Assembly: GCA_950097015.1 (NCBI GenBank)
Contig: CATNEN010000008.1
Span: 4,464,001-4,528,000, forward strand
Source: Macrostomum hystrix
Taxonomy: Eukaryota > Animalia > Platyhelminthes
DNA length: 64,000 nt
Reading direction: 5' to 3'
In this document: piece by piece, positions 6,654-32,000 of the stretch
Numbering within the stretch: the first letter of the stretch is position 1
Layout: the number at the start of each line of letters is the position of its first letter
Notes under the pieces: generated by a model
Told to the model about the DNA's origin: nothing
The model's input: the letters and a program-made list of their open reading frames with translations, nothing else
The model's database searches: none
Program-made: the position numbers and the translations under genes

Positions 6654-7875
6654 TCACAGGTCGATGCGGGCCACCTGAAGAAAGCTGAGGTCCTGCCTAG
6701 CCGAGTAGATCACAAATCGGTCCTGGCCGGGCACTGAAACATCGCTGCGCAGTGTCACGCTGATCTGGCTGCCGGCATCCAGTGTGACCATGCCAACTGT
6801 CAGGCAGGTCAGCGGCCGCACTGTGCTCAGAACCCGGCCGGTGAACTTGGCCGAGCCGTCGACCTGTACGGTGCACTCGATACTCCGAGGCACGCTGACG
6901 TTGTGCATCCGGACCACCAGCTGGGCGGCCACATAGTACATGCCCGCCTGCAGCACCCGCACCGAGGTGTCGTCGGGCGTCACGGCGAAGGCGTCCTCTT
7001 GGTAGGCGTGCTTCGGCACCCAGGGCCGCACTGGGATGTCGTTTTTGTGCTCTGTAATAATGATAATAATAAATTATTACACCTGCCACAATCGGGCCAG
7101 ATGTGCTGCCGACTGAAGGCTGCGTACAGCTGTTCACGCAGGACGCCACACCCACCCTCCATCACCCCAGCTGATGCTGGTTCCCATTTAACAGCTGGGT
7201 GAACTGAAGCAAATCAGAGTTTGAGTGTCTTGCTAAAGGACGCAAATTGTTCCAGTGGAGTGGGGAATCGAACTCCCGACCTTCAAGTCGTGAGTCCAAC
7301 AGTCTAAACGCTAGGCTAAAATCCCCCTTGGGAAATTAATAAAAGGCAATTTCAGCACAAAAGTACATGCTTAATGATCAGAGCAGTTTTCGATGGCGCT
7401 AAATTAATTACCTCTGCTCACGATGGCTCCCTGTCTCACTGTGCAGAAGAGACCCTGGAAGTTGCCACCACACGCTGGCAACCTTTCTGAGCTCAGTCTC
7501 AGGGAGATCTGAAAATCAGATTTTTGAATCACTACAGATTGAGTCTAAATTATTGTAGGATTCCACACAGTTTTGAGTACTCCCATCTCAATCGCTCACC
7601 ATTCGAGTCTCATCGGCGAGATGCTCGGATGAGTTCAACCAGCTGCTATTCAGCTTCGGATCGAATCGCTTCAGCCCGACTGTTGTGCTGAAGGTGAGAA
7701 CGCCGAGGACGCAGGCGGCCACCGCTGCCGCAGCCAGAACTAGCCGGGAGTGCCTTCTCGCCTTGGACATGCGGACTTGACGACTGACTGTTGGCTTGGA
7801 TGCAGCTGCTGGAGGCTCAACAGACTGAGCTTCCACTTGGAGCAGATGAGCATCGGGACTCGCCTCTTGAGACAT
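6654..7875 (-). CDS. TNF-ligand-like gene A (type II membrane, 256 aa, 3 exons)
   Basis: Exons 7875-7600, 7508-7412 and 7051-6654 (phases 0, 1), all GT-AG and in frame. TM segment LVLAAAAVAACVLGVLTF. TNF-domain hallmarks VRVLQAGMYYVAAQL, GMVTLDAGSQISV and C-terminal SFLQVARI. Confidence 0.75.
7054..7327 (-). mobile_element. tRNA-headed CORE-like SINE family 2 in intron 2 of TNF-like gene A
   Basis: Minus-strand head with GTTCGATTCC B box. CORE-like segment CCTTTAGCAAGACACT...TGCTTCAGTTCACCCAGCTGTTAAATGGG. (ATT)-type tail. Homologous to 31398-31688. Confidence 0.8.
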
Positions 7876-8479
7876 GTTTGGTTGAGTTCAGTAGACTTGT
7901 TTCAATCGTTGATTTGCTTCTAGAATGGAAGCTTTTGTTAGCAAAATGAAGTCCCTGGCTTATTATAAAGCCTGGGCAACCCTTGGCCCGCGTTCCCTTG
8001 GCCATCATTCTAGCTAAAAATAGCAATTCTGAAGTGCTCCTTAGGCCTGCCGCCGACTGGTGTCGTTGCGATGAAATCTCTGCAGCAGTTAAAATTAGAA
8101 GCTCATTGTGCCAGTTAGTGGCAGAGAATTGTGACGCCTCATTATTTTGTTGCTTTTTGGCACAGCTTTCGCCGTTTAATTTTGCAACCCTCGAGATTAA
8201 ATTTAGGTCCAGTCGGCGGTTTTCGAATAAACGAAAATAAAACATCACAATAATTAATTATATTTAAACAAAGTTTATTTTTGACAGTTTTAGCATTCTA
8301 AAAAAATTATAACCGACCTGATAATCTTTTTATTTCTCAGGTTAATCAATCAATTTATAACTGATGTAATTGATCTAAAAGATAATTTATAAATTGATCT
8401 CGTATCTGAAAATCGATGTGTTGATCGATTTTATTTTTATGAATTGACGATTTGATAATCAATGAATTGACTTATCTGA

Positions 8480-10765
8480 TAAAAATGATCTCTCTTATAA
8501 TCTGTGGATTAATCTCTCTGATCATCTGTGGATTGAATTCTCTGATCATCTGTGGATTAATCTCTCTGATCATCTGTGGATTAATCTCGCTGATCATCTG
8601 TGGATTGAATTCTCTGATCATCTGTGGATTGAATTCTCTGATCATCTGTGGATTGAATTCTCTGATCATCTGTGGATTGAATTCTCTGATCATCTGTGGA
8701 TTGAATTCTCTGATCATCTGTGGATTGAATTCTCTGATCATCTGTGGATTAATCTCTCTGATCATCTGTGGATTAATCTCGCTGATCATCTGTGGATTGA
8801 ATTCTCTGATCATCTGTGGATTGAATTATCTGATCATCTGTGGATTGATCTCTCTGATCATCTGTGGATTAATCTCTCAAATCATCTGTGGATTGAATTC
8901 TCTGATCATCTGTGCATTAATCTCTCTAATCATCTGTGGATTAATCTCGCTGATCATCTGTGGATTGAATTCTCTGATCATCTGTGGATTAATCTCGCTA
9001 ATCATCTGTGGATTGAATTTACTGATCATCTGTGGATTAATCTCTCAGATCATCTGTGGATTGAATTCTCTGATCATCTGTGGATTGAATTCACTGATCA
9101 TCTGTGGATTGAATTATCTGATCATCTGTGGATTGAATTCACTGATCATCTGTGGATTGAATTATCTGATCATCTGTGGATTGAATTCACTGATCATCTG
9201 TGGATTGAATTATCTGATCATCTGTGGATTGAATTATCTGATCATCTGTGGATTGAATTCTCTGATCATCTGTGGATTAATCTCTCTGATCATCTGTGGA
9301 TTAATCTCGCTGATCATCTGTGGATTAATCTCTCAAATCATCTGTGGATTGAATTCTCTGATCATCTGTGGATTGAATTCACTGATCATCTGTGGATTGA
9401 ATTATCTGATCATCTGTGGATTGAATTCACTGATCATCTGTGGATTGAATTATCTGATCATCTGTGGATTGAATTCTCTGATCATCTGTGGATTAATCTC
9501 TCTGATCATCTGTGGATTGAATTATCTGATCATCTGTGGATTGAATTCACTGATCATCTGTGGATTGAATTATCTGATCATCTGTGGATTGAATTATCTG
9601 ATCATCTGTGGATTGAATTATCTGATCATCTGTGGATTGATCTCTCTGATCATCTGTGGATTAATCTCTCAAATCATCTGTGGATTGAATTCTCTGATCA
9701 TCTGTGGATTAATCTCGCTGATCATCTGTGGATTAATCTCTCAAATCATCTGTGGATTGAATTCTCTGATCATCTGTGGATTGAATTCACTGATCATCTG
9801 TGGATTGAATTATCTGATCATCTGTGGATTGAATTCACTGATCATCTGTGGATTGATCTCTCAAATCATCTGTGGATTGAATTCTCTGATCATCTGTGGA
9901 TTAATCTCTCTGATCATCTGTGGATTGAATTATCTGATCATCTGTGGATTGAATTCACTGATCATCTGTGGATTAATCTCTCTGATCATCTGTGGATTGA
10001 ATTATCTGATCATCTGTGGATTGAATTCACTGATCATCTGTGGATTGAATTATCTGATCATCTGTGGATTGAATTATCTGATCATCTGTGGATTGAATTA
10101 TCTGATCATCTGTGGATTGATCTCTCTGATCATCTGTGGATTAATCTCTCAAATCATCTGTGGATTGAATTCTCTGATCATCTGTGGATTAATCTCTCTG
10201 ATCATCTGTGGATTAATCTCGCTGATCATCTGTGGATTAATCTCGCTGATCATCTGTGGATTGAATTCTCTGATCATCTGTGGATTAATCTCTCTGATCA
10301 TCTGTGGATTAATCTCTCTGATCATCTGTGGATTGAATTCTCTGATCATCTGTGGATTAATCTCTCTGATCATCTGTGGATTAATCTCTCTGATCATCTG
10401 TGGATTAATCTCTCTGATCATCTGTGGATTAATCTCTCTAATCATCTGTGCATTAATCTCTCTGATCATCTGTGCATTAATCTCTCTAATCATCTGTGGA
10501 TTAATCTCTCAGATCATCTGTGGATTAATCTCTCAGATCATCTGTGCATTAATCTCTCTGATCATCTGTGGATTGATCTCTCTGATCATCTGTGGATTAA
10601 TCTCGCTGATCATCTGTGGATTGAATTCTCTGATCATCTGTGGATTAATCTCTCTGATCATCTGTGGATTAATCTCTCTGATCATCTGTGGATTGATCTC
10701 TCTGATCATCTGTGGATTGATCTCTCTGATCATCTGTGGATTGATCTCTCTGATCATCTGTGGAA
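8480..10765. repeat. 21-bp satellite (TGATCATCTGTGGATTAATCTCTC-type), about 108 units
   Basis: Tandem units with TTAATCTC/TTGAATTC/TTGAATTA variants. Source of the 775-aa IICGL ORF. Confidence 0.97.
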
Positions 10766-11028
10766 TAATGTACCCCTGAATCGAAGGACTTTAAAATGCG
10801 ATCGCCTGTCAACAATTGAGAACTTTGACTAAAAAAACTGATAAAAGAGTTGCGACTTTTGAAGAAATCAGACTTGGGTGGCAACAAAGTTTATAAAACT
10901 GCTAAACTATGGTTGATGAGTCAGTCAGGTCAGGTGACACAGAAGCATGTGCTATGACTTTAGAAAAATGCGAACAAGGATACAGAGCTAGAAATCTAAA
11001 TCAAATGCAGCACGCGGCACACTGCGTG

Positions 11029-11741
11029 AGTGTCAGAGTGTCAGAGTGTCAGAGTTTCAGAGTGTCAGAGTGTCAGAGTGTCAGAGTGTCAGAGTGTCAG
11101 AGTGTCAGAGTGTCAGAGTGTCAGAGTGTCAGAGTGTCAGAGTGTCAGAGTGTCAGAGTGTCAGAGTGTCAGAGTGTCAGAGTGTCAGAGTGTCAGAGTG
11201 TCAGAGTGTCAGAGTGTCAGAGTGTCAGAGTGTCAGAGTGTCAGAGTGTCAGAGTGTCAGAGTGTCAGAGTGTCAGAGTGTCAGAGTGTCAGAGTGTCAG
11301 AGTGTCAGAGTATCAAAGTGTTAGAGTGTCAGAGTGTCAGAGTGTCAGAGTGTCAGAGTGTCAGAGTGTCAGAGTGTCAGAGTGTCAGAGTATCAAAGTG
11401 TCAGAGTGTCAGAGTGTCAGAGTGTCAGAGTGTCAGAGTATCAAAGTGTCAGAGTGTCAGAGTATCAAAGTGTCAGGGTGTCAGAGTGTCAGAGTGTCAG
11501 AGTGTCAGAGTGTCAGAGTGTTGGAGTGTCAGAGTGTCAGAGTGTCAGAGTGTCAAAGTGTCAGAGTGTCAGGGTGTCAGAGTGTCAGAGTGTCAGAGTG
11601 TCAAAGTGTCAGAGTGTCAGAGTGTCAGAGTGTCAGAGTGTTGGAGTGTCAGAGTGTCAGAGTGTCAGAGTGTCAAAGTGTCAGAGTGTCAGAGTGTCAG
11701 AGTGTCAGAGTGTCAGAGTGTCAGAGTGTCAGAGTGTCAGT
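11029..11741. repeat. 8-bp satellite (GTGTCAGA)n
   Basis: Direct inspection; about 89 units. Confidence 0.97.
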
Positions 11742-12217
11742 GCAGTTTCATCATGTCAGTGGTAAGTAGCCAAGTCCTAAATATCCTGAATCAAGTTGTA
11801 ATGTTTGGCTGAGTAATTTGACTGGCAATTTCCGGTTTGATTTAGCAAGATTTCAGAAGTGCAAGTGTTCAGGAAGTGAATCGGAATGTTTAACAAGATC
11901 TCAGTCGATTGAATCCTTCCTAGAAGCTTCATCTTTTACTTGCTTGCACTTGCAATTGCAAAATCGTTTATTTGTCATCGTCTGTTACAGATGACGTGCA
12001 TTGATAAGTGTCCAGCAATTACATGCGAAACATGGACTTGTCAAGCTAAGCCAGGTTAAAAGTGTAACGAGTGACGGAGTGGGGTTGTAACCTGTACGAT
12101 GTATGCAATAATAAATAAATGTACATAGACGTACACTTTAATTTCGGGTCTTGAAGTTAAAATTAATCTAAAAACACCCTCACTCAACGACACAAACTTT
12201 TAGAAGTAAAAGGGAGC

Positions 12218-12830
12218 AAATTGTCCCCAGTCCGATTGTCCCCAGTCAAATTGTCCCCAGTCCGATTGTCCCCAGTCCGACTGTCCCCAGTCCGATTGTC
12301 CCCAGTCAAATTGTCCCTAGTCTAATTGTCCCCAGTCAAATTGTCCCCAGTCCAATTGTCCCCAGTCAAATTGTCCCCAGTCAAATTGTCCCCAGTCAAA
12401 TTGTCCCTAGTCTAATTGTCCCCAGTCAAATTGTCCCTAGTCTAATTGTCCCCAGTCAAATTGTCCCCAGTCCAATTGTCCCCAGTCAAATTGTCCCCAG
12501 TCAAATTGTCCCCAGTCAAATTGTCCCTAGTCTAATTGTCCCCAGTCAAATTGTCCCCAGTCCAATTGTCCCCAGTCAAATTGTCCCCAGTCAAATTGTC
12601 CCCAGTCAAATTGTCCCCAGTCAAATTGTCCCCAGTCAAATTTTCCCTAGTCCAATTGTCCCCAGTCCAATTGTCCCCAGTCCAATTGTCCCCAGTCCGA
12701 TTGTCCCCAGTCCGATTGTCCCCAGTCAAATTTTCCCTAGTCCAATTGTCCCCAGTCAAATTGTCCCTAGTCCAATTGTCCCCAGTCAAATTGTCCCCAG
12801 TCAAATTGTTCCCAGTCCAATTGTCCCCAG
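12218..12830. repeat. 15-bp minisatellite (AATTGTCCCCAGTCA)n
   Basis: Direct inspection; about 40 units. Confidence 0.97.
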
Positions 12831-13263
12831 TGAGTTAAATAATTAAAACCACAATGATTCACTGTTTGCGCAGTTGAAAAGCTACAAATTAATTTTCTAA
12901 AACAAAATTTCTCCTGTATTTTTGTCACTTTTTTATTTCATACAAAATGTACTTTTATTGGGTAAATATAGTTTGTGATTAGAACTTGTGACACTTCATT
13001 GTTATAAAAACGTGTTAAACAGCAAAAAGAATATTTTACTCGAAGTACCTGAAGTTTTTACTGAACAAAATTGTTTAAGAATTTAACTGTCCTGATTTTT
13101 TTCTGAGAAGCAGATAGCAATAATAAACTCTGAAAGTAAATTGTACAGTAACTCAAGAATGGGATGCTCATTCTCTATAGTGAAAGTCACAGCCATAACC
13201 TGGGCCTAAGAACATTGTCAACACCGAGGCCCAGATTTAGTTTATTCAGGAATCAAAGCATTG

Positions 13264-15027
13264 TCACTGGCCAATCCTCGTCACCTGCAGGAAGGTGAGT
13301 TCCTTCCTACAAACGTGCAGCCTGAACTGATCCTGCCTCTCTCTGATTCCGTCCAGACTTGTCAGACTGACCCGGATTCGAGCTCCGGCCCGCAGGTGCC
13401 GTATGCCGATCGTCATGCAGGTCAAGGGCCGGCTGACGCTCAGTGACCTGGCAGCCGAACTGGGATCACTGTCGTCGATGTGCAAGGCGCACTCGATGGT
13501 GCGGACTGAGCTGGCATCCACCAGCTGGGCCACGAGCTGCGTGGTCATGTGGTACAGGCCGGGGCGCAGTACAACCAGTGTGGAGCCGCCATCGGCCAGA
13601 GAGAAGGCACCGTCTGCGACGTTTCCACTGCTGCTGTCTGGAGTCCATGGCGCCACAGTCACTGAGCTCTTGCCAGCTGGAATGCAATTTTAAGGGGCTA
13701 AATGACTGCAGACCTATTGCGGTACCAACTACCAACTGCAGTACCAACTACAGAACCAACTACAGAACCAACTACAGAACCAACTACAGAACCAACTACA
13801 GAACCAACTACAGAACCAACTACTGCACCAACTACAGGACCAACTACAGAACCAACTACAGAACCAACTACAGTACCAACTACAGTACCAACTATGGTAC
13901 CAAAAGCAGTGCCAACTACAGTACCAACAACAGAACTAACTATGGTACCAACTACAGTACCAACTAAACCACCAACTACAGTACCAACTAAACCACCAAC
14001 TACAGGACCAACTACAGTACCAACAATTACTAACAGTTGTCTAATCGGTTACCTCTGCTCAGAATGTCCATGTCGCGGCACAGATTCCCATAGAACTTGC
14101 TTTGACACGATTCCAAGCGTTCGTAAGCGATCCGCAGAGTGATCTAGAATGCGTATTGAATTCGTTTGTCAGGATTCAGAAGGCCCATGTTGGTCAGTGA
14201 TTGAATACCCAGCCAGGATTTTGTAGGGCTTACATTATCAGCCAAGACGCTGTTCGCATTGTCCATGGTCCTGGCCACCTGCAGGTAGGTGCTCTCCGGC
14301 TTGAACACTTGGATCCTGAACTGGCTCTTGTCCAGAGAGTCGTCAAGGTTGCGCAACCGGACACCAATCACGTCACCACCCCGCAGCCTCAGAATGCTGA
14401 CCGCCAGGCAGCTGATTGGCCGGCCGGCGCTCACGGACCGACCAGAGAAGGCCGCCCGGCCGTTGATGGTGATGTCGCACACGACGTCCTTGGCTGCGCC
14501 GGCTTCCTCCAGCAGCAGCTGGGTGGTGAGCTGAGTTTTTATTTTATACAAACCAGGCCGCTGCACCTGCACCTGTGCCGCCTGATTGACCACCGCGAAG
14601 CTGCCAGCCTTGGCGGTGCCATCGACAATGGCCCAAGGTCCGAGCTCGACATTTTTCTGACCCTCTGAAGTTTAAAAGTCAGTCAGTCAACAAATTCTGG
14701 TTAATTCTCTAAATAACAAACCATTGGCATTTAAAAAATTTAGCTAATTTTCTCACTTTTGGTCAGCACGATGGAGTTGCGGCAGAGGCTGCCGTTAAAA
14801 ACTCCCTGGCACGATGTCAGTTGTTGGGAGTCGACTTTCATAAAAATCTGGAAGTTAACATTAAGAAATAGTTATTTGAGCCGTACAGTTAGGCGCGAAG
14901 GTTCACAAAGGTGCGCGAAATTTACCGTGTCGGGAAGTTGGGACGAGTTCCCGAAAGGCGCGCCTTGCGCCAGCGGTATTCCTCCTAGGAGCAGCAGAAT
15001 AGCGACCACGGCTCCGAAGCTGAGCAT
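13264..15027 (-). CDS. TNF-like gene B with two tandem TNF homology domains (375 aa, or 389 aa from ATG 15069; 5 exons)
   Basis: Exons 15027-14926, 14847-14757, 14664-14234, 14143-14053 and 13676-13264 (phases 0, 1, 0, 1), all GT-AG with an open frame. N-terminal hydrophobic segment MLSFGAVVAILLLLGGIPLAQGA. Both domains have PGLY...TQL, L(R/H)xxG and T(Y/F)LQVxR motifs. TATA-like TATAAAT near 15151-15157. Confidence 0.75.
13728..14020. repeat. 12-bp minisatellite (ACCAACTACAGA)n in intron 4 of gene B
   Basis: Tandem units lying between the exons ending at 14053 and starting at 13676. Confidence 0.92.
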
Positions 15028-15782
15028 TCTCAGATGAGAAGTAGATTGATTCTTGGCGCAACTGGGCATACTGGCGAAATTTGATCAGGAAGCCTCGGTG
15101 AGTTTCTCTTAGAAGACTCGTTAACTTTGTGGCAGAGAAATTTGCGCCTTATTTATAGGCAATTTTTTGTCAGGTCATCCGCGCACTTCAGTCTAAATTG
15201 TCACTTCCGTTGGTTTCGCCACAGGCTGTAAATAGCATCAGTTTAGCCTCGCCCTCGACCAAGCCCTTCTAAAAATAGCGCCCGCCAACTCGAAAAGCCG
15301 CCAATTTTTTCATTCGCCATTCCGCACCGCCATTGTGTGATTCTTCCTGAAAATAACCTCTCGCCTTTGTTGACCATTGCCAAAAATACCCATTGTGCAC
15401 CTGCCACAGTGGATGAAATTAGAAACCTGTTGTTTGTGTTATCAATAAACTTCGACCTAGAGATTAATCAGAACTTGAATAGTTTTTTAATTTCTCAATT
15501 TGGCAACATTTCTTAGAAACAAAGTTCACCATCGCATACATTTTTAGACGAAAACATATTTTAAAGAAATTTCCTAAATACAATGGCCTTTTAAACGCCC
15601 TAAAATTCTATGATTTTAGTATTTTAAAAATAAAATCACGAAAAAAGTACCGGTTTATTAAACAAATATTATGATTCTCAATAATTGTTGCCCATCTGAC
15701 GGACAGGCCCAAAATATTCCTTTAATTAATTCCCACTCCACTTAAATAATTTGCGCCATTTAGCAAGACAAACTGAATGCCA

Positions 15783-18700
15783 AAAGAGTGTCTCAGTATC
15801 CCTGAAGAGTGTCTCAGCATCCCTGAAGGGTGTCTTAGTATCCCTGAAGAGTGTCTAAGCATCCCTGAAGAGTGTCTCAGTATCCCTGAAGAGTGTCTAA
15901 GCATCCCTGAAGGGTGTCTTAGTATCCCTGAAGAGTGTCTAAGCATCCCTGAAGAGTGTCTAAGCATCCCTGAAGGGTGTCTTAGTATCCCTGAAGAGTG
16001 TCTAAGCATCCCTGTAGAGTGTCTCAGTATCCCTGAAGAGTGTCTCAGTATCCCTGAAGAGTGTCTAAGCATCCCTGAAGGGTGTCTCAGTATCCCTGAA
16101 GAGTGCCTCAGCATCCCTGAAGGGTGTCTCAGCATCCCTGAAGGGTGTCTCAGTATCCCTGAAGAGTGTCTCAGCATCCCTGAAGGGTGTCTCAGTATCC
16201 CTGAAGAGTGTCTAAGCATCCCTGAAGAGTGTCTCAGTATCACTGAAGAGTGTCTAAGCATCCCTGAAGAGTGTCTAAGCATCCCTGAAGAGTGTCTAAG
16301 CATCCCTGAAGAGTGTCTAAGCATCCCTGAAGGGTGTCTCAGCATCCCTGAAGAGTGTCTAAGCATCCCTGAAGAGTGTCTAAGCATCCCTGAAGAGTGT
16401 CTAAGCATCCCTGAAGAGTGTCTAAGCATCCCTGAAGGGTGTCTCAGCATCCCTGAAGGGTGTCTCAGTATCCCTGAAGAGTGTCTAAGCATCCCTGAAG
16501 GGTGTCTAAGCATCCCTGAAGGGTGTCTTAGTATCCCTGAAGGGTGTCTCAGCATCCCTGAAGGGTGTCTCAGCATCCCTGAAGGGTGTCTCAGTATCCC
16601 TGAAGAGTGTCTAAGCATCCCTGAAGAGTGTCTAATATCACTGAAGAGTGTCTCAGTATCCCTGAAGGGTGTCTCAGCATCCCTGAAGGGTGTCTCAGCA
16701 TCCCTGAAGGGTGTCTCAGTATCCCTGAAGAGTGTCTAAGCATCCCTGAAGAGTGTCTAATATCACTGAAGAGTGTATCAGTATCCCTGAAGAGTGTCTC
16801 AGTATCCCTGAAGAGTGTCTCAGCATCTCTGAAGAGTGTCTCAGTATCACTGAAGAGTGCCTCAGTATCCCTGAAGAGTGCCTCAGTATCCCTGAAGAGT
16901 GTCTAATATCACTGAAGAGTGTCTCAGTATCCCTGAAGAGTGTCTCAGCATCTCTGAAGAGTGTCTCAGTATCACTGAAGAGTGCCTCAGTATCCCTGAA
17001 GAGTGCCTCAGTATCCCTGAAGAGTGTCTAATATCACTGAAGAGTGTCTTAGTATCCCTGAAGAGTGTCTTAGTATCCCTGAAGAGTGTCTCAGTATCTC
17101 TGAAGAGTGTCTTAGTATCCCTGAAGAGTGTCTCAGTATCCCTGAAGAGTGTCTCAGTATCCCTGAAGAGTGCCTCAGTATCCCTGAAGAGTGTCTAATA
17201 TCACTGAAGAGTGTCTCAGTATCCCTGAAGAGTGTCTCAGTATCCCTGAAGAGTGTCTTAGTATCACTGAAGAGTGTCTCAGTATCCCTGAAGAGTGTCT
17301 CAGTATCCTGAAGAGTGTCTCAGTATCCCTGAAGAGTGTCTTAGTATCCCTGAAGAGTGTCTTAGTATCCCTGAAGAGTGTCTCAGCATCCCTGAAGAGT
17401 GTCTAATATCACTGAAGAGTGTCTCAGTATCCCTGAAGAGTGTCTCAGCATCCCTGAAGAGTGTCTAATATCACTGAAGAGTGTCTCAGTATCCCTGAAG
17501 AGTGTCTCAGCATCCCTGAAGAGTGTCTAATATCACTGAAGAGTGTCTCAGCATCCCTGAAGAGTGTCTAATATCACTGAAGAGTGTCTCAGTATCCCTG
17601 AAGAGTGTCTCAGCATCCCTGAAGAGTGTCTAATATCACTGAAGAGTGTCTCAGTATCCCTGAAGAGTGTCTCAGCATCCCTGAAGAGTGTCTAATATCA
17701 CTGAAGAGTGTCTCAGTATCCCTGAAGAGTGTCTCAGCATCCCTGAAGAGTGTCTAATATCACTGAAGAGTGTCTCAGTATCCCTGAAGAGTGTCTCAGC
17801 ATCCCTGAAGAGTGTCTAATATCACTGAAGAGTGTCTCAGTATCCCTGAAGAGTGTCTCAGCATCCCTGAAGAGTGTCTAATATCACTGAAGAGTGTCTC
17901 AGCATCCCTGAAGAGTGTCTAATATCACTGAAGAGTGTCTCAGTATCCCTGAAGAGTGTCTCAGCATCCCTGAAGAGTGTCTAATATCACTGAAGAGTGT
18001 CTCAGTATCCCTGAAGAGTGTCTCAGCATCCCTGAAGAGTGTCTAATATCACTGAAGAGTGTCTCAGTATCCCTGAAGAGTGTCTCAGCATCCCTGAAGA
18101 GTGTCTAATATCACTGAAGAGTGTCTCAGTATCCCTGAAGAGTGCCTCAGTATCCCTGAAGAGTGTCTAATATCACTGAAGAGTGTCTCAGTATCCCTGA
18201 AGAGTGTCTCAGTATCCCTGAAGAGTGTCTTAGTATCACTGAAGAGTGTCTCAGTATCCCTGAAGAGTGTCTCAGTATCCTGAAGAGTGTCTCAGTATCC
18301 CTGAAGAGTGTCTTAGTATCCCTGAAGAGTGTCTTAGTATCCCTGAAGAGTGTCTCAGCATCCCTGAAGAGTGTCTAATATCACTGAAGAGTGTCTCAGC
18401 ATCCCTGAAGAGTGTCTAATATCACTGAAGAGTGTCTCAGTATCCCTGAAGAGTGTCTCAGCATCCCTGAAGAGTGTCTAATATCACTGAAGAGTGTCTC
18501 AGTATCCCTGAAGAGTGCCTCAGTATCCCTGAAGAGTGTCTAATATCACTGAAGAGTGTCTCAGTATCCCTGAAGAGTGTCTCAGTATCCCTGAAGAGTG
18601 TCTTAGTATCACTGAAGAGTGTCTCAGTATCCCTGAAGAGTGTCTCAGTATCCTGAAGAGTGTCTCAGTATCCCTGAAGAGTGTCTTAGTATCCCTGAAG

Positions 18701-19777: not shown

Positions 19778-20542
19778 TCACGGCAGCCGCACCGCACGAA
19801 TGTAGGTGCTGGCCTCAGTTGTCTGCAGCTCCTGCCGACTCAGCATCCGCAACTTCATCGTGACTTTGTCGCCAGCCCGCAGCGTCACCAGAATGTTCAG
19901 CTTGCAGACGAGGCTGACATCCGTGACAGCGGTGCCAGGCTCCGATTGCAACATCTCGTGCTCGCAGACGCGCCTACCGATCACACCGTTGATGGCCAAG
20001 CCGCCGGACAGGTGCAAGTCACCCGAGCTGAAGCGAACGCGCGCGGCTGCGTCAACGATGTAGACGCTGTCGCGAAGGGCACGGATGTGCCTCCGGTCGG
20101 GCGTCAGCTCAAAGTCCTCGGCCAGCTCGCCAAAATGCTTGAGTGGCCCCAGACTGCCAGCAGTCATGTATCGCCTGGCCTCCCAGCAGGGGTCGCCAGG
20201 GCATGCGCCGGTGTTGGACACGTCCAGAAAGAACTCTGACAGTCGGGCGCTCTGCGGCTTGTCCTGTCTGTGCGGGCTGCTCAATCGGCCGATCTGCTGC
20301 AAGTTTCGGACGCTGAGGGCCAGCGCAACGAGCGCGCAGGTCGCGAGGGCCACGCCAGCGACGACTCCAAGGCGGGGCCTCCAGCAGCTTTGAGATGATC
20401 GTAGCCTCGAGGATGTGACACCTTCTTCTAGTCGGCATAGCTCCGTCGGGGTGACGCACTTCGATTCAAGTTCGCTGAAATTATCCGTGATAGTTTCGGC
20501 TGAGCCATCCACTGCCTGGTGGGCCTTGTCGGTTACTCTCAT
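19778..20542 (-). CDS. TNF-ligand-like gene C (type II membrane, 254 aa, intronless)
   Basis: Single ORF with TM LGVVAGVALATCALVALALSV. TNF-like FELTPDRRHIRALRDSVYIVDA, LVTLRAGDKVTM and STYIRAVRL. TATAAG near 20672-20677. Confidence 0.75.
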   Translation of the reverse strand: MRVTDKAHQAVDGSAETITDNFSELESKCVTPTELCRLEEGVTSSRLRSSQSCWRPRLGVVAGVALATCALVALALSVRNLQQIGRLSSPHRQDKPQSARLSEFFLDVSNTGACPGDPCWEARRYMTAGSLGPLKHFGELAEDFELTPDRRHIRALRDSVYIVDAAARVRFSSGDLHLSGGLAINGVIGRRVCEHEMLQSEPGTAVTDVSLVCKLNILVTLRAGDKVTMKLRMLSRQELQTTEASTYIRAVRLP

Positions 20543-21002
20543 GGCTGTGGCTGAGTTCTTGTGAGTTTGAATTTTAGCTACCTTTTTTACGGCGCGTTTA
20601 AATTTTGTTTAAACGGACGCTTCCCCGATAAATCCCTGGATTGGCCCTGGCACAAGCCGTTGGCGACGTTCCTTATAGCTCGGTGCTGGCATGTACACGC
20701 GTACGTAATCTATTTTTAGTTTTTTAGCATTCGGAATTTCCCTGGGACTTCCAATGGCCTTCTTGACTTCCTTCTAGTGACTCAATTAAGAAGTACGTTT
20801 TTTATCACAAGGAAGTTTGCTTTGGTACAAGCAATGAGTCATGCTGATACTATTGCGAAAAAAATTCAAACAATTCTTTTTTGTAATAACAGCCTAGCAT
20901 TCTTATCTACCCTAAAAGTGCACTAAGGATTGTAAAGAGAGGTGAAGCCTTCGTGATTTCCTCTAAACAACTGTGCTTTAATGATCTCTGTATAGTATTT
21001 TG

Positions 21003-22700
21003 GAATGCCTGAAGAGTGTCTTAGTATCCCTGAAGAGTGTCTTAGTAGCCCTGAAGAGTGTCTTAGTATCACTGAAGAGTGTCTTAGTATCACTGAAGAG
21101 TGTCTTAGTATCCCTGAAGAGTGTCTCAGTATCACTGAAGAGTGTCTCAGTATCCCTGAAGAGTGTCTTAGTATCACTGAAGAGTGTCTTAGTATCACTG
21201 AAGAGTGTCTTAGTACCACTGAAGAGTGTCTAAGTATCCCTGAAGAGTGTCTTAGTACCACTGAAGAGTGTCTAAGACCACTAAGGAGTGTCTCAGCATC
21301 ACTGAAGGGTGTCTCAGTAACCCTGAAGAGTGTCTTAGTATCCCTGAAGAGTGTCTTAGTATCCCTGAAGAGTGTCTAAGTATCCCTGAAGAGTGTCTTA
21401 GTATCCCTGAAGAGTGTCTTAGTATCCCTGAAGAGTGTCTTAGCATCACTGAAGAGTGTCTCAGTATCACTGAAGAGTGTCTTAGTATCACTGAAGAGTG
21501 TCTTAGCATCACTGAAGAGTGTCTCAGTATCCCTGAAGAGTGTCTTAGCATCACTGAAGAGTGTCTTAGCATCACTGAAGAGTGTCTTAGTATCCCTGAA
21601 GAGTGTCTTAGTATCACTGAAGAGTGTCTTAGCATCACTGAAGAGTGTCTCAGTATCCCTGAAGAGTGTCTTAGTACCACTGAAGAGTGTCTAAGACCAC
21701 TAAGGAGTGTCTCAGCATCACTGAAGGGTGTCTCAGTAACCCTGAAGAGTGTCTTAGTATCCCTGAAGAGTGTCTTAGTATCCCTGAAGAGTGTCTAAGT
21801 ATCCCTGAAGAGTGTCTTAGTATCCCTGAAGAGTGTCTTAGTATCCCTGAAGAGTGTCTTAGCATCACTGAAGAGTGTCTTAGCATCACTGAAGAGTGTC
21901 TCAGTATCACTGAAGAGTGTCTTAGCATCACTGAAGAGTGTCTCAGTATCCCTGAAGAGTGTCTTAGCATCACTGAAGAGTGTCTTAGCATCACTGAAGA
22001 GTGTCTTAGTATCCCTGAAGAGTGTCTTAGTATCACTGAAGAGTGTCTTAGCATCACTGAAGAGTGTCTCAGTATCCCTGAAGAGTGTCTCAGTATCCCT
22101 GAAGAGTGTCTTAGTATCACTGAAGAGTGTCTTAGTATCCCTGAAGAGTGTCTTAGTATCCCTGAAGAGTGTCTTAGCATCACTGAAGAGTGTCTCAGTA
22201 TCACTGAAGAGTGTCTTAGCATCACTGAAGAGTGTCTCAGTATCACTGAAGAGTGTCTTAGCATCACTGAAGAGTGTCTCAGTATCCCTGAAGAGTGTCT
22301 TAGCATCACTGAAGAGTGTCTTAGCATCACTGAAGAGTGTCTCAGTATCCCTGAAGAGTGTCTTAATATCCCTGAAGAGTGTCTTAGCATCACTGAAGAG
22401 TGTCTTAGTATCCCTGAAGAGTGTCTCAGTATCACTGAAGAGTGTCTCAGTATCCCTGAAGAGTGTCTCAGTATCCCTGAAGAGTGTCTCAGCATCCCTG
22501 AAGAGTGTCTTAGCATCCCTGAAGAGTGTCTCAGTATCCCTGAAGAGTGTCTCAGTATCCCTGAAGAGTGTCTCAGTATCCCTGAAGAGTGTCTAAGTAT
22601 CACTGAAGACTGTCTCAGTATCCCTGAACAGTGTCTCAGCATCCCTGAAGAGTGTCTCAGCATCCCTGAAGAGTGTCTCAGCACTCCTGAAGAGTGTCAA
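21003..22700. repeat. 21-bp satellite, array 2 (same family and orientation as 15783-18963)
   Basis: Units CCCTGAAGAGTGTCTTAGTAT and CACTGAAGAGTGTCTTAGCAT. Contains a 419-bp internal duplication (21268 and 21687). Confidence 0.97.
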
Positions 22701-23245
22701 AGTACCATGTAGTTTGTCCACAAAGTTTTCACTAAATTGAAACCGTAGGGTCCCAGAAGAATGTGTGGGACATCCCTGAAGAGTATCGGGGAAGCCTGGA
22801 AGTGTCCTTTAGTCCCTGAAGGGTTTTTGCGTATCATTAAAGAGATTAGAAGACATCGAAATTTTTATGGCTAATAAGCTAGCAAAACTTTTCTGAATTT
22901 TCAGAATTCCGTGTATTGTAACACTAGATGACTGGTTGCACTTGCTAGTATATTTTGGCTAACAGAATGTGTTCCATTAAGAAAGTTTTAATGATGATAT
23001 ATACACGAAATATAAAGCTTTGGTATAAAACAGCTATGCTTTTATGCAGGACATGCAATTTTGTAATGTTGGACGATTAGCGTTAAATAATAAAAAGTAA
23101 CGAGATAGATGTTAATAAATGGAAGAGTAATGGAGCAGTAACAGCATGCCGCCAATTAGAACACTGCAGCTACATTGATTGAAGCAAATCGCACAATAAA
23201 CGGTCATTCGGTCATGTAATCCTGCAATGGATGCTCACAGTGTGC

Positions 23246-24043
23246 TCATCCGATGCGGACCAGCCTTAGAAATGTACTCCGGGATGATTTCTGAACCATC
23301 TGCCGATTGTGCAGGTTCAGTTTGATTGACAGCTCATCTCCGGCCAGCAGTTTGGCGTATCCGCTGAGCTGGCACTGCAGAGTCTCCGACTGCAGCCTCA
23401 GAGACTCTGCTGGCAGCACGGGGAGGCGCTGGAGACAGTTCAGCACATCCATTTTTTCCAGATTTTTGGAGCTGCCCGCTTGCTGTCTAATGACCTCGAT
23501 AGAGCCCTGCAGAGCCAGGCTGCCGGACTCGAAGGTCACGCGCACCTGAGCGTCAATGCCGAACACACCTGGACGCAGGATGCGAACCCGGCGTCGATCC
23601 TCGGTCAGCTGGAAGCAGCCAGCTTGGCTGGTTTGGTCTGTCTGGCGCAGCCGGCCCAGGCCAGTTTTGGTCATCATGTACTGCACGCCACTCAGGCACG
23701 GGTTTTCCAAGTTGCCTTCGTCCTCACATTTCTTCAAGGAAGATATGTCCAGAGCGAAAGCTGCGAATTGTGCCTGCGACTCGGCTGACTGCTGCTGCTG
23801 CTGCTGCATGGCCTGAAACAAGCGTCTTCTTCCGCTGATATTGCCGTTGAGCATCTCGTCTAGGCCAGCCGGTGAGTTCCGGTCTCCAATGACAACAAGG
23901 CAGATGGCAACGAGGCCTAGCAGCAAGCCGGACCCAGCAGCGGTGGCAAGGCAGGCTTTGCGGCACGAGCCGGATCGCCTAGGAGCAGCGGAATTCACTT
24001 CAATAGCTGACGGAGTCTGCACCAGAGGAAGTTCTTGAGACAT
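23246..24043 (-). CDS. TNF-ligand-like gene D (type II membrane, 265 aa, intronless)
   Basis: TM LLLGLVAICLVVIG and a basic stalk cluster GRRR. TNF motifs VRILRPGVFGIDAQV, YAKLLAGDELSI and STFLRLVRI. Confidence 0.8.
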   Translation of the reverse strand: MSQELPLVQTPSAIEVNSAAPRRSGSCRKACLATAAGSGLLLGLVAICLVVIGDRNSPAGLDEMLNGNISGRRRLFQAMQQQQQQSAESQAQFAAFALDISSLKKCEDEGNLENPCLSGVQYMMTKTGLGRLRQTDQTSQAGCFQLTEDRRRVRILRPGVFGIDAQVRVTFESGSLALQGSIEVIRQQAGSSKNLEKMDVLNCLQRLPVLPAESLRLQSETLQCQLSGYAKLLAGDELSIKLNLHNRQMVQKSSRSTFLRLVRIG

Positions 24044-25451: not shown

Positions 25452-27998
25452 ATGAATGGACCGTACGAGAATCTGATCCAGTCGGGCCTCGATAACCCAG
25501 CATGTTTGGATCACGCGGAATATGGGCCAATTGAGAAGCGATTTGTCAAACGACCCGACGATGCTTATCGAGTTAAAAGTTTGACTGCCAAATTTTCTGT
25601 CATTTGCGCCGTGATCCTGCTGGTGGCAGCGGCCTCTACAACTGGCATGTCCGGCTGGGCCTATTATTCGATGCGGCAGAGAGCTGACAATAGTCCATGC
25701 GTGAGCACCGATATACTAAATATGAATTTTATATAAAAAACTAAATTCACTTGCACTGATTTTCATTGCAGACCTACACAGCCTTTGTCTTGGACACTGA
25801 TGCCATACAGTCATGCGGACTGCCTGCTATGCACCACCCACCGTGTCAGATTAACTCCACCGGGGCATTGTTGACCTCTGAGATGTGTAAGTTGTGGATT
25901 TGCTTCTAAATCTGCTTTGTAAAGCTAGATTATCAATCCATTCTGTCCTCCGAGGCTAGATTAACAAACCATTGTATTCTCCGAGGCTAGATTAGCAATC
26001 CATTCCATCCTCCGAGGCTAGATTAGCAATCCATTCTATCCTCCGAGGCTAGATTAGCAATCCATTCTTATCCTCCGAGGCTAGATTAGCAATCCATTCT
26101 TATCCTCCGAGGCTAGATTAGCAATCCATTCTTATCCTCCGAGGCTAGATTAGCAATCCATTGTATTCTCCGAGGCTAGATTAGCATCTATTCTATCCTC
26201 CGAGGCTAGATTAGCAATCTATTCTATCCTCCGAGGCTAGATTAGGAATCCATTCTATCCTCCGAGGCTAGATTAGCAATCCATTCTTATCCTCCGAGGC
26301 TAGACTAGCAATCCATTCTTATCCTCCGAGGCTAGATTAGCAATCCATTCTTATCCTCCGAGGCTAGATTAGCAATCCATTCTTATCCTCCGAGGCTAGA
26401 TTAGCAATCCATTCTTATCCTCCGAGGCTAGATTAGCATCTATTCTATCCTCCGAGGCTAGATTAGCAATCTATTCTATCCTCCGAGGCTAGATTAGGAA
26501 TCCATTCTATCCTCCGAGGCTAGATTAGCAATCCATTCTTATCCTCCGAGGCTAGACTAGCAATCCATTCTTATCCTCCAAGGCTAGATTAGCAATCCAT
26601 TCTTATCCTCCGAGGCTAGATTAGTAATCCATTCTTATCCTCCGAGGCTAGATTAGCAATCCATTCTTATCCTCCGAGGCTAGATTAGCAATCCATTCTG
26701 TCCTCCGAGGCTAGATTAACAAACCATTGTATTCTCCGAGGCTAGATTAGCAATCCATTATTATCCTCCGAGGCTAGATTAGCAATCCGTTCTTATCCTC
26801 CGAGGCTAGATTAGCAATCCATTATTATCCTCCGAGGCTAGATTAGCAATCCATTCTGTCCTCCGAGGCTAGATTAACAAACCATTGTATTCTCCGAGGC
26901 TAGATTAGCAATCGATGATAATCTCCTAAGCTAGACTATGTCTCTATATTAGTCATGCACCTATGACTCAAACGGCACAAACTTAATGAAGAAAAGAACA
27001 ATTTGGTGCGAAAGTTTATTTTAAGCAACACAAGGTAATTACTGCCCAACACTTAGAAAAAGGATGTGCAATTATACTGAATCTGTACGCGTGCTTCACT
27101 CATTGAAACTAACTAGGATGTCCCGCCTGTAACTTCTAAAAATGTTTTCTAAATGTATTACTATATTCAAATTACCCTACTATCAGTAGAGTAGGTAGTA
27201 GGTTCTTGCAATATTTAATTTAACGATATAGAGCTGCCATGTTTATTTGCACAGTCAACAACGCAGTGGGGCCCTGGAAATCTGGAGAGCTGGACGGTGT
27301 TGTCGACGGCGGCTACAGCGGCAGCGTCTGCGGCTTCGAGCTGGAGAGGTCTAGGACCCACCTGGTTGTGCGCCAGCCTGGCTTGTACCAGCTGACTGGC
27401 CAGGTGAGCTAGAGGGCGAGGTAGAACGATTCGGTCAATAAATCATAATTGATTAATCAATCCATCGATTAAACAAACATAAAATGACTAAATCATTCAA
27501 AAGATAAATCGATCTATAAATGGAATAACCGATGTATAAATAGAATAACCGATCTATAAATAGAATAACCGATCTATAAATAGAATAACCGATCTATAAA
27601 TAGAATAACCGATCTATAAATAGAATAATCGATCAATAAATAGAGTAATCGATCGAAAAATAAAATATTCGATCGATAAACTGCCGTATCGATCGACAAA
27701 GAGACTAAATCGATCGATACAAAATCGATCAATGAAAGAGTATATAAAACGACGAATTACTTGTTGCTAGGTAACCTTCACTGACGATGGCCCGGCCCAC
27801 CTGGAGTGGCAGGTGAATCACGCCGAGTGGATCGCCGTGAAGCGCGGCCGCGGCGATCGCGCCGGGCCAACTCAGGCCCGCCTGGAGGCCGTGCGCCGGC
27901 TGGCTGCCGGAGACAAGCTGTCGCTGCACCTGGACCGGGGCGAGAGGCGCCTAGCAACCCCTGCCCCGACTACCCACATCGGGCTTGTCCGCCTCTGA
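25452..27998 (+). CDS. TNF-ligand-like gene E (type II membrane, 246 aa, 4 exons)
   Basis: Exons 25452-25700, 25772-25886, 27255-27403 and 27771-27998 (phases 0, 1, 0), GT-AG and in frame. TM FSVICAVILLVAAASTTG. Motifs HLVVRQPGLYQLTGQVTF, VRRLAAGDKLSL and THIGLVRL. Confidence 0.78.
25928..26935. repeat. 31/32-bp minisatellite (ATCCTCCGAGGCTAGATTAGCAATCCATTCT)n in intron 2 of gene E
   Basis: About 32 tandem units with no unique spacers. Confidence 0.95.
27520..27730. repeat. 20-bp minisatellite (AAATAGAATAACCGATCTAT)n in intron 3 of gene E
   Basis: Direct inspection; degenerate toward the ends. Confidence 0.85.
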
Positions 27999-28597
27999 AC
28001 TGTCCTGACCGTGCTGAGGCAAGTGGACTACTAAATGGCCAATGTTTGATTTTTAGGTTTTTTATTGCAGCATAATGTAATAAGCTTGCACAAATTCATT
28101 GATCAATGCGCTCGAAAGCATGACTCACTCAGTCCATTGTTTTTTTACTTGCCTTTGCACATTCTAACTGTAAATGTATTTCCCGAAGTGATACTTTTGC
28201 CTTATAGCTAGCAGCTGACTGCTTAATTAATTATTTGGTGTAACAATGCTTTCTGATTTATTTTAATCTGCTTTACGGACATTAATAAATAACGACTAAA
28301 GACCAGCTTTTTAAACGTTTAAACAAAATTTCAAAATTCAAAACGACATTTATTTATATTAAACATTTTTTGATAATTATTGAAAACTGAAGCTTGAAAA
28401 TGATCAAACAAACACTCGAACAAAGAAACTTTAATTTCTGTTAGACTTTTCCAGTGTGCGATATTATGTATAAGCAACAAAAAATGGGAAGAGAAAACAA
28501 AAGCTGCAATTCTATTTTTGCTGGATAAATTATTTGAAAAATTACTAAAGTTTAGACACCCTAAAAATACTACTATTTCTTTTTTCAAGTCCTCCGA

Positions 28598-29018
28598 TCC
28601 ACTTGTTCACCCACCCTCCCAGTTCACACTTGTTCACCCACCCTTCCAGTTCACACTTGTTCACCCACCCTTCCAGTTCACACTTGTTCACCCACCCTTC
28701 CAGTTCACACTTGTTCACCCACCCTTCCAGTTCACACTTGTTCACCCACCCTTCCAGTTCACACTTGTTCACCCACCCTTCCAGTTCACACTTGTTCACC
28801 CACCCTTCCAGTTCACACTTGTTCACCCACCCTCCCAGTTCACACTTGTTCACCCACCCTTCCAGTTCACACTTGTTCACCCACCCTTCCAGTTCACACT
28901 TGTTCACCCACCCTTCCAGTTCACACTTGTTCACCCACCCTCCCAGTTCACACTTGTTCACCCACCCTTCCAGTTCACACTTGTTCACCCACCCTTCCAG
29001 TTCACACTTGTTCACCCA
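28598..29018. repeat. 27-bp minisatellite (CACTTGTTCACCCACCCTTCCAGTTCA)n
   Basis: About 15 units just downstream of the glycosyltransferase stop codon. Confidence 0.95.
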
Positions 29019-29032
29019 AAGTTCTCGTACAG

Positions 29033-32000
29033 TCAGGCGTAGCACAGTCTTGCAGCCAGCCTGGTGTTCTCAAGCTCCGCTGGTCCCAGAGGCCCGCCGC
29101 CCGCATTGTTAGGCCTGCCCAGCAGCAGTTCGCGGACTGGGAATCGCCGCAGGGGCCGCCGCCGTTCGTTCCGAGCGGCAGCCGGGTAGCCCAGGTGCAA
29201 GAACCGGTGAACGCCCAGCGTATTGGAGGTGAGCCACTTCTCAGCCAGCTGACTGTAGCCGGATTGGCTCAGCTTGCGACAGGCAGCGAGCTTCAGCGGA
29301 TTGTGTTCGCGGCTCTCTGACGCTCGGATGTGAAAATAATAGTTCTGACGCAACCGGTGGGATGCCGCTCGGCTTCCCTCCGGATTCAGGAGTCGCTCTG
29401 CGATGTGGTAATTTTACACATAACGAATTTCTAATTCGCGCACTTGAAGTCCAGCCGGTGGATATTTTTAGATCTGAGTGAGCGACTCTCAATGTACGTA
29501 GGTAATGTACGCTGACTATTTTCAAATATGAGAGTGCAAATGGTAGTGTACATAGATTATGTTCGTTTGTTAATTTTAGATCTCATAGTCTTACCCTCAT
29601 TGTACATAGGTAATGTACGCTGGCTATTTTTAGATCAGAGAGTGCAACTCGAAGTAAAGATAGATTATGTTCGTTGGCTTCTTTTAGATCTAGGAGTACA
29701 AATCCAATTTACCATAGGTAATGAACGCATACATATTCTTTGTTTTAATGAGTTGTAAACAGACTGTACAAATATGCGCTTATAGAACATTTGTGCGTAA
29801 AGCGGTGCTTAAAAAAGCAGTAAAAAACAATATAGTCTTTATACTGTTTATAATAAATTAAGCTACACTCGTAATATTTTATCTAGCAGTTGACGTAAGT
29901 TATTGGTGGGAAAAGTACATTTGTAAAGCTTTTTTTCTTTGAAGACACATGAGATGCATTCAAATGTTTGAACTTACCACAGACAGACTTCAATAACGCT
30001 GATCTATCCAACAATGGCGAGAACACACTCGGACTTAACAGTCTCAGGCGCTGACTCAAGTTGGGCGTCACGGAGCGGTACTGCTGGTACTGCTGAGTCA
30101 GGTAGATGGGCCCCGTGGAGCTGATTATGTCTTCAACTGTAAGGCAGGATAATTAACACGCGATAAAATCCATTATCTGCGTGACTTGTACAGAAAGATA
30201 TGCTATTAGCAGCGATGACTCATCGCCAGTCGATGGCGTGGGGTGGGTGTCGACGAAATCGTGATAAGGCATCAACCAATTGGAGAAAAGTGAGCTATTT
30301 TTAGACTGCTAAGTGCTAATTCATACCGTTTTTCTTGCTAGGCAGGTTCTGTATAACTTGCTCCAGAAACGGATGCCTCTTCGTACAGCCGAGGACAGAA
30401 TTCATGACCGAGTACTCGATGCCGTGCAGAATTTGAGTCTGCTCCGGGCGTTCTTGATCGAAGAAGCAGGTCTCAGTGGCCACAAGGGAGTCTAGCGGTT
30501 GTATGCAGTGCACGTCCATGTCTATGTACACACCTGCCATGGACAAGGAAACAACGAATCAAAGAAGGAAATTGACCATTAACTTCGCCGTGAAAGGTAG
30601 ATATTACTTTTAATTAAGTGTTTACCAAATCTACTTTTTATTAAGATTTGTAATGATTTAAAAAAACTAAATTTATTATTCGCAGTAACTGACAGTAAGA
30701 GATAACCCCAGAGATAAGGAGAAGGCTGAAGGGTAAAAGGAATGAGGACGGGTCAGAGGGTAAGAGCTGAAAAGGAGGGGGTGAGGAAAGAGAGACGAAC
30801 AGCTAGCCAATCAGAGGCGAGGGAGAGGAGAGAGGAGAAAGTACAATAAGAGGTCACGCGAGCGTGAACTAACACAGAGAGATCAAGGAAAAGTAATAAC
30901 AAGACTTAAAGCGCTACAAGACGCGTACATTTGAATGTACTTTAGTGTACATATTAACGCATCGAATGTTACATTGGAGTGTAAATTCGTGCAAAAAGTA
31001 ACTGAAATGTACATCACAATCACAATGAACATTTAAATGAATCAGCGCCATAACGCATGACTATTAAGAGTATTAAGAGTAAGGCACACACAGTTCATTT
31101 CTTCCTCAGCTGAAAAATGCATCAAATCTTGCTTTGCTATTCCACGCTCAACTCAAAGTTTTCGCGAAAGCAGTTTCTGTAAATATTTCATTCGACGCCT
31201 GGGAGGCAACTGTTTTCCGATGCAATTCTTTTGTTGTAGGAAAAATCAAAGAAAAAAGTTGTGGGTGGTGCCACATGCTAACAAGGGCCTCTGTCTACTA
31301 TACAAATCTACTGTGCAGCATGCAACACTTGCCACTGTAAATAAGGTAGAAATGGCAACAGAATATTTTATTGAATAATTCATGGAATGCTTCATTTCAG
31401 TACGCCTGCCCAATCGGGCCAGATGTGCAGCCGACAGCACAGCCGCAGCTACTGCGTGGCACATCTGAAGGCTGCGTACGGCTGTTCAGTCCATGGACTG
31501 GAAGGACGCCACACCCACCCTCAATTACACCCGCTGATGCTGGTACCCAATTAACAGCTGGGTGAATTAAAGCAATGTAGAATTAATTGTTTTGCTAAAA
31601 AGCATAAACCTTGACAGTGGAATCAGGATTCGAACCCCCGACCTACAATCCGTGAGTCTAAAGCTTCAGCCACTAGGCTACAACCTCCTTTGCCTGCATG
31701 AATCATTCACACAATGGCTCATACAATGGCTCATACAATGGTTCATACAATGGCTCATACAATGGCTCATACAATGGTTCATACAATGGCTCATACAATG
31801 GCTCATACAATGGCTCATACAATGGCTCATACAATGGCTCATACAATGGCTCATACAATGGCTCATACAATGGCTCATACAATGGCTCATACAATGGTTC
31901 ATACAATGGCTCATACAATGGCTCATACAATGGCTCATACAATGGTTCATACAATGGCTCATACAATGGCTCATACAATGGTTCATACAATGGCTCATAC

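Follow-up and report, generated by a model that had tools for sequence, protein, structure and literature searches.

An expressed gene of Macrostomum hystrix joins two TNF-like domains in one chain

TNF ligands signal as trimers, and a chain that carries two protomers therefore poses a stoichiometry problem, one that, to our knowledge, protein engineers have explored only through three-domain single chains. A locus of the flatworm Macrostomum hystrix raises this problem in a natural setting. The window analyzed here, 64,000 nt of contig CATNEN010000008.1 (positions 4,464,001 to 4,528,000, forward strand), contains a minus-strand gene, gene B, which a preliminary description made from the sequence had presented as a tandem two-domain TNF-like protein that arose by duplication of an exon pair. 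We asked whether both domains are encoded by one transcript, whether they belong to the TNF family, what a chain of this kind might assemble into, and how it could have originated.

From the sequence and its translations, gene B consists of five exons with one open frame running across all of them, and its four introns all begin with GT and end with AG. The features of the gene are the following (positions in the window).

13038..15108, minus strand: extent of the spliced mRNA covered by transcript contigs (X1, 13039-15106; X2, 13038-15108)
15150..15157, minus strand: TATAAATA, a putative TATA-like box recognized in the sequence about 42 nt before the 5' end of the contigs
15108-15070, minus strand: 5' UTR, without ATG (sequence reading)
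14926..15069, minus strand: coding part of exon 1, 144 nt, 48 codons, ending in phase 0 (sequence, translation)
14757..14847, minus strand: exon 2 (91 nt; phase 0 at its start, phase 1 at its end), in which domain 1 begins, with strand A, the Cx8C loop and an NGS site (sequence, translation, contigs, alignment)
14234..14664, minus strand: exon 3, 431 nt; remainder of TNF-like domain 1 and the linker (translation, AlphaFold2, Foldseek)
14234..14269, minus strand: linker TMDNANSVLADN, the last 12 codons of exon 3 (translation, alignment)
14144..14233, minus strand: intron 3 (90 nt), without an in-frame stop before the TAG of its acceptor (14146-14144) and removed in the contigs (translation, contigs)
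14053..14143, minus strand: exon 4 (91 nt; phase 0 at its start, phase 1 at its end), in which domain 2 begins and which carries the second Cx8C loop (translation, contigs, alignment)
13730..14024, no strand: 12-nt minisatellite of 24.6 copies within intron 4 (repeat detection)
13264..13676, minus strand: coding part of exon 5, 413 nt including the stop TGA (13266-13264); remainder of TNF-like domain 2 (translation, AlphaFold2, Foldseek, VIA)
13038..13263, minus strand: 3' UTR (contigs)

Exon arithmetic gives a protein of about 389 residues. The preliminary description had considered starts at 15027 and 15069; both ATGs are present, and the one at 15069, with an A at position -3, is the first AUG of the gene, given that the 5' UTR contains no ATG. 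As judged from its position, TATAAATA may act as the TATA-like box of this gene. Translation of exon 1 revealed a 15-residue N-terminal stretch with K, H and R, followed by the hydrophobic segment LSFGAVVAILLLL, which the preliminary description had already pointed out, and then by GGIPLAQG/AP. This segment, of 13-19 residues and with the AQG/AP site after it, fits a cleavable signal peptide, but may instead form a short type II anchor of the kind present in the paralogues described below; with either N-terminus, both domains of gene B would be extracellular. The Cx8C loops read SCQGVFNGSLC in exon 2 and SCQSKFYGNLC in exon 4. Introns 1 and 3 are both in phase 0.

The transcript data come from three small runs of one study (X1, X2 and X3), in which 20-55% of the words sampled from the stretch are present and whose contigs were aligned to positions 12800-15400. 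The runs lack a record as RNA; however, they behave as transcript assemblies, since the introns of gene B are uncovered, except for a 42-nt contig in the minisatellite of intron 4. Single contigs from X1 (1432 nt) and X2 (1435 nt) join all five exons at the predicted borders with zero mismatches. The covered blocks are 13038/9-13676, 14053-14143, 14234-14664, 14757-14847 and 14926-15106/8, and the four skipped parts show CT..AC on the plus strand, that is, GT..AG on the strand of gene B. X3 contains the joints between exons 1, 2 and 3. The presence of the joint between exons 3 and 4 places both domains on one pre-mRNA. Contigs of this type cannot phase distant junctions, and rare or minor isoforms are dropped from them. 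The preliminary description had named transcripts stopping near 14144 as the observation that would make the domains two separate genes; instead, spliced contigs cross from exon 3 to exon 4 and intron 3 is uncovered. Thus, gene B is a real, expressed gene that is spliced into one mRNA encoding two tandem TNF-like domains, and transcripts ending at the intron-3 stop are not its main form. Other elements of the preliminary description were borne out as well: the length of exactly 91 nt, the 0-to-1 phase and the Cx8C loop of exons 2 and 4 by sequence, translation and contigs, and the tandem two-domain architecture by a single spliced transcript in X1 and X2 together with TNF-ligand fold matches for both domains.

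The two domains, D1 (exons 2 and 3) and D2 (exons 4 and 5), are about 35% identical, and each one carries the four cysteines and the core strand motifs of the subfamily. Within the window, the internal repeat was detected between exons 3 and 5 (E=4e-21, 34% identity) and between exons 2 and 4 (E=2e-4); by this sequence comparison, it is not a product of chance. Four further genes of the window align with or resemble these domains.

6654..7875, minus strand: gene A, 5.2 kb downstream of gene B on the same strand, encoding a type II membrane paralogue with one domain (alignment, Pfam, translation)
7875-7600, 7508-7412 (97 nt, Cx8C) and 7051-6654, minus strand: exons of gene A
19778-20542: gene C, a single-exon type II gene
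23246-24043: gene D, a single-exon type II gene
27257-27997, plus strand: gene E, in which the domain is split differently

The first exon of gene A encodes a cytoplasmic tail and a membrane segment, and the positions and phases of its introns match those of gene B. In the products of genes A, C and D, an internal hydrophobic segment lies near the N-terminus, which is the arrangement of type II TNF ligands. Gene A had been proposed as the closest paralogue of gene B by motif; this is true for D2, with which it is 38% identical and has the PW, IEC, RPLTC and FLQV motifs in common, while its identity with D1 is about 28-30%. The window probably contains, gene B included, a cluster of TNF-superfamily ligand genes that have diverged strongly.

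To place the domains in a family, the large exons (3 and 5) were searched and folded singly, using one AlphaFold2 run per exon and a five-row alignment of the window paralogues; exons 2 and 4, and with them strand A, lie outside these models and were covered by a Pfam scan and the alignment, and exon 1 by its translation. In the Pfam scan, D2 (exon 5) reached 13.6 bits against the TNF family PF00229, below the cut-off of 23 (E=0.065), D1 gave no match to this family, and the last exon of gene A matched it with E=0.008 and 16.6 bits. A profile built from D1, D2 and the large exon of gene A found ectodysplasin (EDA) first in the PDB (E=0.008), and TNF ligands made up all but two of the 24 matches listed. 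The AlphaFold2 models are all-beta (pLDDT 80 for exon 5 and 77.4 for exon 3; pTM 0.75). With both of them, the top Foldseek matches were 4-1BBL, EDA, TRAIL, Eiger and APRIL, with E of about 3e-6 and TM scores of 0.53-0.68. VIA-align of D2 returned APRIL, EDA, TRAIL, BAFF, CD40L, TWEAK, RANKL and Eiger over 109-127 residues, with Z from 13.6 to 12. Each large exon is therefore predicted to fold as a TNF-ligand jelly roll, in line with the expectation that exons 3 and 5 (431 and 413 nt) each complete a domain; exons 2 and 4 belong to the same domains, since they encode strand A and the Cys loop. Neither domain looks decayed: both keep the core residues in the alignment and fold confidently.

The predicted fold places gene B in the C1q/TNF superfamily. 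Within it, three observations favor the TNF branch: TNF ligands rank ahead in the sequence and fold comparisons; paralogues A, C and D are built as type II membrane proteins; and gene B resembles, in its motifs, the TNF ligands published for the free-living flatworm Macrostomum, in which strand A is likewise followed by a Cys loop and then by an LGP[LW] motif, and the C-terminal strands are similar (PMC7519573). D2 and the window paralogues end one or two residues past the last strand; D1 alone extends beyond the family C-terminus, by about 10 residues, and this extension plus the two residues before it forms the linker of about 12 residues noted in the preliminary description. AlphaFold2 confidence is low in this region (pLDDT <50 at residues 136-143 of exon 3), and the linker is predicted to be disordered.

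From these results, we consider it probable (about 0.72) that this expressed five-exon gene directs into the secretory pathway a chain with two TNF-homology domains (THDs), which would act as an extracellular TNF-type ligand, one chain supplying two protomers. The chain would begin with a signal peptide or short anchor and continue with THD1 (exons 2 and 3), the disordered linker and THD2 (exons 4 and 5).

With only two protomers, this chain cannot close a trimer alone. The most likely form, although we give it somewhat less than an even chance, would be a closed homomer of three chains and six domains, arranged as two linked trimers or as one trimer with three pendant domains. Such a homomeric particle could act with higher valency or with two specificities. 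Measurements on the secreted vertebrate protein C1QTNF4 (CTRP4), which has two tandem C1q domains, offer a precedent: domain 2 drives its assembly into trimers, hexamers and larger species, while domain 1 alone is monomeric (PMC8042453).

A different arrangement, which we regard as distinctly less probable, is that D1 and D2 lie side by side in one trimer, the third place being taken by the membrane-anchored product of gene A or by an isoform of gene B with one domain only. With gene A, this would be a heterotrimer of fixed 2:1 make-up resembling that of lymphotoxin alpha and beta, in which a secreted protomer and a membrane paralogue encoded by neighboring genes come together; the analogy is functional, and the lymphotoxin protomers, unlike those of gene B, are separate chains. 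Engineered single-chain TNF ligands use short linkers, and the 12 residues found here are within the range used, although the engineered chains have three domains and fill a trimer, whereas the natural chain of gene B has two. The structure closest to D2 is of this kind: PDB 4zch (Z 13.6), a single-chain APRIL-BAFF-BAFF, has its protomers linked C- to N-terminus by short linkers. The arrangement is also favored by the location of gene A, the nearest paralogue of D2, 5.2 kb away on the same strand, and by the phase 0 of introns 1 and 3 together with the open intron 3, with which D1-only and D2-only products are possible on paper: retention of intron 3 or skipping from exon 1 to exon 4 would yield in-frame single-domain products. 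In addition, AlphaFold models in a preprint on invertebrate ligands show the two THDs of one gene packing together (10.1101/2024.07.27.603686). Against it, the contigs show only the full-length form of gene B, D2 and gene A are just 38% identical, and no interaction was detected between the two domains of C1QTNF4 (PMC8042453). The strict version, a "two-thirds single-chain" ligand in which D1-D2 occupies two trimer places and A or a single-domain splice form of B the third, as an obligate 2:1 heterotrimer, seems to us unlikely. If true, it would present three different receptor grooves and would be a hard-wired counterpart of lymphotoxin alpha/beta, which assembles by mass action.

We also weighed whether gene B functions as a C1q-like secreted recognition protein, comparable to the invertebrate C1qDC lectins and to CTRP4, rather than as a receptor-activating TNF ligand. 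The fold scores of the two branches are close, as C1q domains enter the VIA-align results of D2 at Z 12.0 (Caprin-2 C1q), about 1.5 Z below the TNF ligands at 13.6. Exon 3 gave a weak, below-cut-off match to Pfam BclA_C (E=0.017), and an ESM Atlas search by features returned only bacterial and phage clusters that are C1q/BclA_C-like. The layout of CTRP4 is likewise equal to that of gene B, with a signal-peptide-like N-terminus and two jelly rolls of the C1q/TNF superfamily; in CTRP4, a secreted protein without a collagen stalk, these are joined by a linker of about 10 residues. However, CTRP4 belongs to the C1q branch and goes back to an independent duplication, and its domain 2 alone drives oligomerization and receptor binding. 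The best sequence-profile and Foldseek matches of gene B are nearly all TNF ligands; its exons gave zero matches to Pfam C1q (PF00386) at E up to 10, and their translations are all free of Gly-X-Y repeats. The type II membrane topology of the proteins of genes A, C and D is a trait of TNF ligands, and the motifs that gene B has in common with the published Macrostomum TNF ligands point the same way. We consequently hold the C1q-like function to be improbable. The weakest alternative is that D1 and D2 are made separately, through the stop of a retained intron 3 or as two genes, the tandem chain being minor or artefactual; this is very improbable, because even though intron 3, a short one of 90 nt, stays open in frame as far as the TAG, and a retained-intron isoform could escape contigs that drop rare variants, the joint between exons 3 and 4 (90 nt skipped, GT..AG) is found in the sole covering contigs, from two runs, intron 3 is uncovered, and its 90 nt contain neither an exon 1 nor a signal sequence for a separate D2 gene.

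Regarding the origin of the two-domain chain, the module repeated in gene B comprises two exons, of 91 nt and roughly 420 nt, on either side of a phase-1 intron, with phase 0 at both ends, so that a second copy would be readable in frame after loss of the first stop. The chain could thus stem from an old tandem duplication, which would have copied either the exon pair or an entire gene that was then fused. In gene A, with its single domain, the introns lie at the same positions and in the same phases, and this makes the exon pattern a trait of the subfamily. In raw identity, D2 is nearer to A (38%) than to D1 (35%). A maximum-likelihood tree of five rows (D1, D2 and A, with C and D as outgroup) paired D1 with D2 weakly, at 79/82, the branch of D1 being the longest, and the AU test rejected neither D2 with A (p=0.19) nor D1 with A (p=0.13). 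Local alignments of the introns, of the end of D1 plus intron 3, and of the 3' UTRs of D2 and A did not rise above shuffled controls, with the one exception of a weak match between the UTRs of D2 and A (p about 0.01 against these controls). An 8-nt match, GACAATGC, picked out by eye as a remnant of the duplication, was not significant. The exon-pair duplication put forward in the preliminary description is thus compatible with the data, but it is not established: gene A has the same exon pattern, and the tree and the AU test leave room for other pairings. By the same comparisons, fusion of two tandem genes is equally possible. By either route, the duplication behind D1 and D2 is old.

Several genes with more than one THD have been described before, and the novelty that had been implied for a two-domain TNF chain was overstated. 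A preprint reports TNF genes of Cnidaria, Mollusca and Arthropoda (an ostracod) that encode two or three THDs, with three in Darwinula stevensoni A0A7R9A6L1 and two in Crassostrea virginica A0A8B8AD19, among others; ligands of Macrostomum lignano are mentioned in it only as a single cluster (10.1101/2024.07.27.603686). Like gene B, these genes have several THDs in one frame, a comparison of architecture and not of homology, and the preprint attributes them to in-frame duplication, with one case of two THDs fused outside the membrane (10.1101/2024.07.27.603686). They are predicted proteins, mostly with a transmembrane segment before each THD (10.1101/2024.07.27.603686), whereas gene B belongs to a flatworm, its chain carries a single hydrophobic segment, at the N-terminus, and a linker of 12 residues, and its splice joints are seen in transcript contigs. 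Since tandem THD genes and tandem C1q proteins had both been described, a tandem THD chain is not a new principle; the architecture of gene B is real but rare and already on record, and what is new is the flatworm phylum and the transcript support.

As for flatworms, the survey of Bertevello et al. 2020 lists 17 TNF ligands, all of them with a single TNF domain, and the motifs of genes A, B, C, D and E are absent from its files (PMC7519573). We also searched 1.84 billion proteins with the profile of D1, D2 and A, obtaining five matches below 1e-3, none below 1e-10, and no orthologue; from the lack of matches below 1e-10, we conclude that the collection lacks the proteins of this animal. The best match (P0001), considered as an orthologue, looks unrelated and is a tandem C1q/BclA_C-like protein.

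A natural two-domain ligand with transcript support would allow a test of how such a chain assembles, and of whether it brings raised valency or mixed specificities. RNAi and transgenesis exist in Macrostomum and would make such tests feasible. The genes of this window add to the set of flatworm TNF ligands beyond the published survey (PMC7519573), and these added ligands bear on what the TNF receptors of flatworms bind.

The full form of gene B, the five-exon gene with two TNF-like domains, was the only one observed in the transcript-like contigs of public runs. We noted that its 90-nt intron 3 (14144-14233) has a reading frame that is open until a TAG at the acceptor. Additionally, introns 1 and 3 are both in phase 0, so the frame would also be kept if exon 1 were joined directly to exon 4. 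Given these two features, secreted products containing only domain 1 (exons 2 and 3) or only domain 2 (exons 4 and 5) could, on paper, also be produced. At the 3' end, the AATAAA immediately following the stop codon (13241-13246) is passed over; the contigs stop about 200 nt beyond it, near 13038, and this end is preceded by an AGTAAA (about 13058-13063).

Domain 2 includes a fifth cysteine, located in the LHVCRK motif of exon 5 (codon 13297-13299), at a position occupied by Phe in domain 1 and by Ser in the single-domain paralogue, gene A. The mature chain therefore has an odd number of cysteines, which makes an inter-chain disulfide possible, with this residue as a candidate.

The window contains further TNF-like genes:

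19778-20542, gene C, intronless
23246-24043, gene D, intronless
27257-27997, plus strand, gene E

The domain of gene E is interrupted by an additional intron after the PGLYQLTGQ strand, and this intron carries an AT-rich tandem repeat. The window is also rich in long minisatellites, whose repeat units measure 12, 15 and 21 nt among other lengths, and these give rise to spurious long ORFs on both strands:

13730-14024, minisatellite within gene B intron 4
12217-12831 and 15784-17000, further minisatellites
8452-10779, 10909-11812, 20923-22712, 26400-26930 and 28518-29112, other minisatellites

When a profile of both gene B domains and gene A was searched against 1.84 billion proteins, the top match was P0001, a public protein of 451 aa in which a ubiquitin-like N-terminal part is followed by two nearly identical tandem C1q/BclA_C-like domains. 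Among published ligands, the C-terminus of M. tuba comp64136 (STFLQIARLSD) resembles the ends of gene A and of gene B domain 2 (PMC7519573 Data S3). The Cys loop directly following strand A is also common to the published Macrostomum TNF ligands (PMC7519573 Data S3), and for this reason it looks like a family trait in macrostomids.
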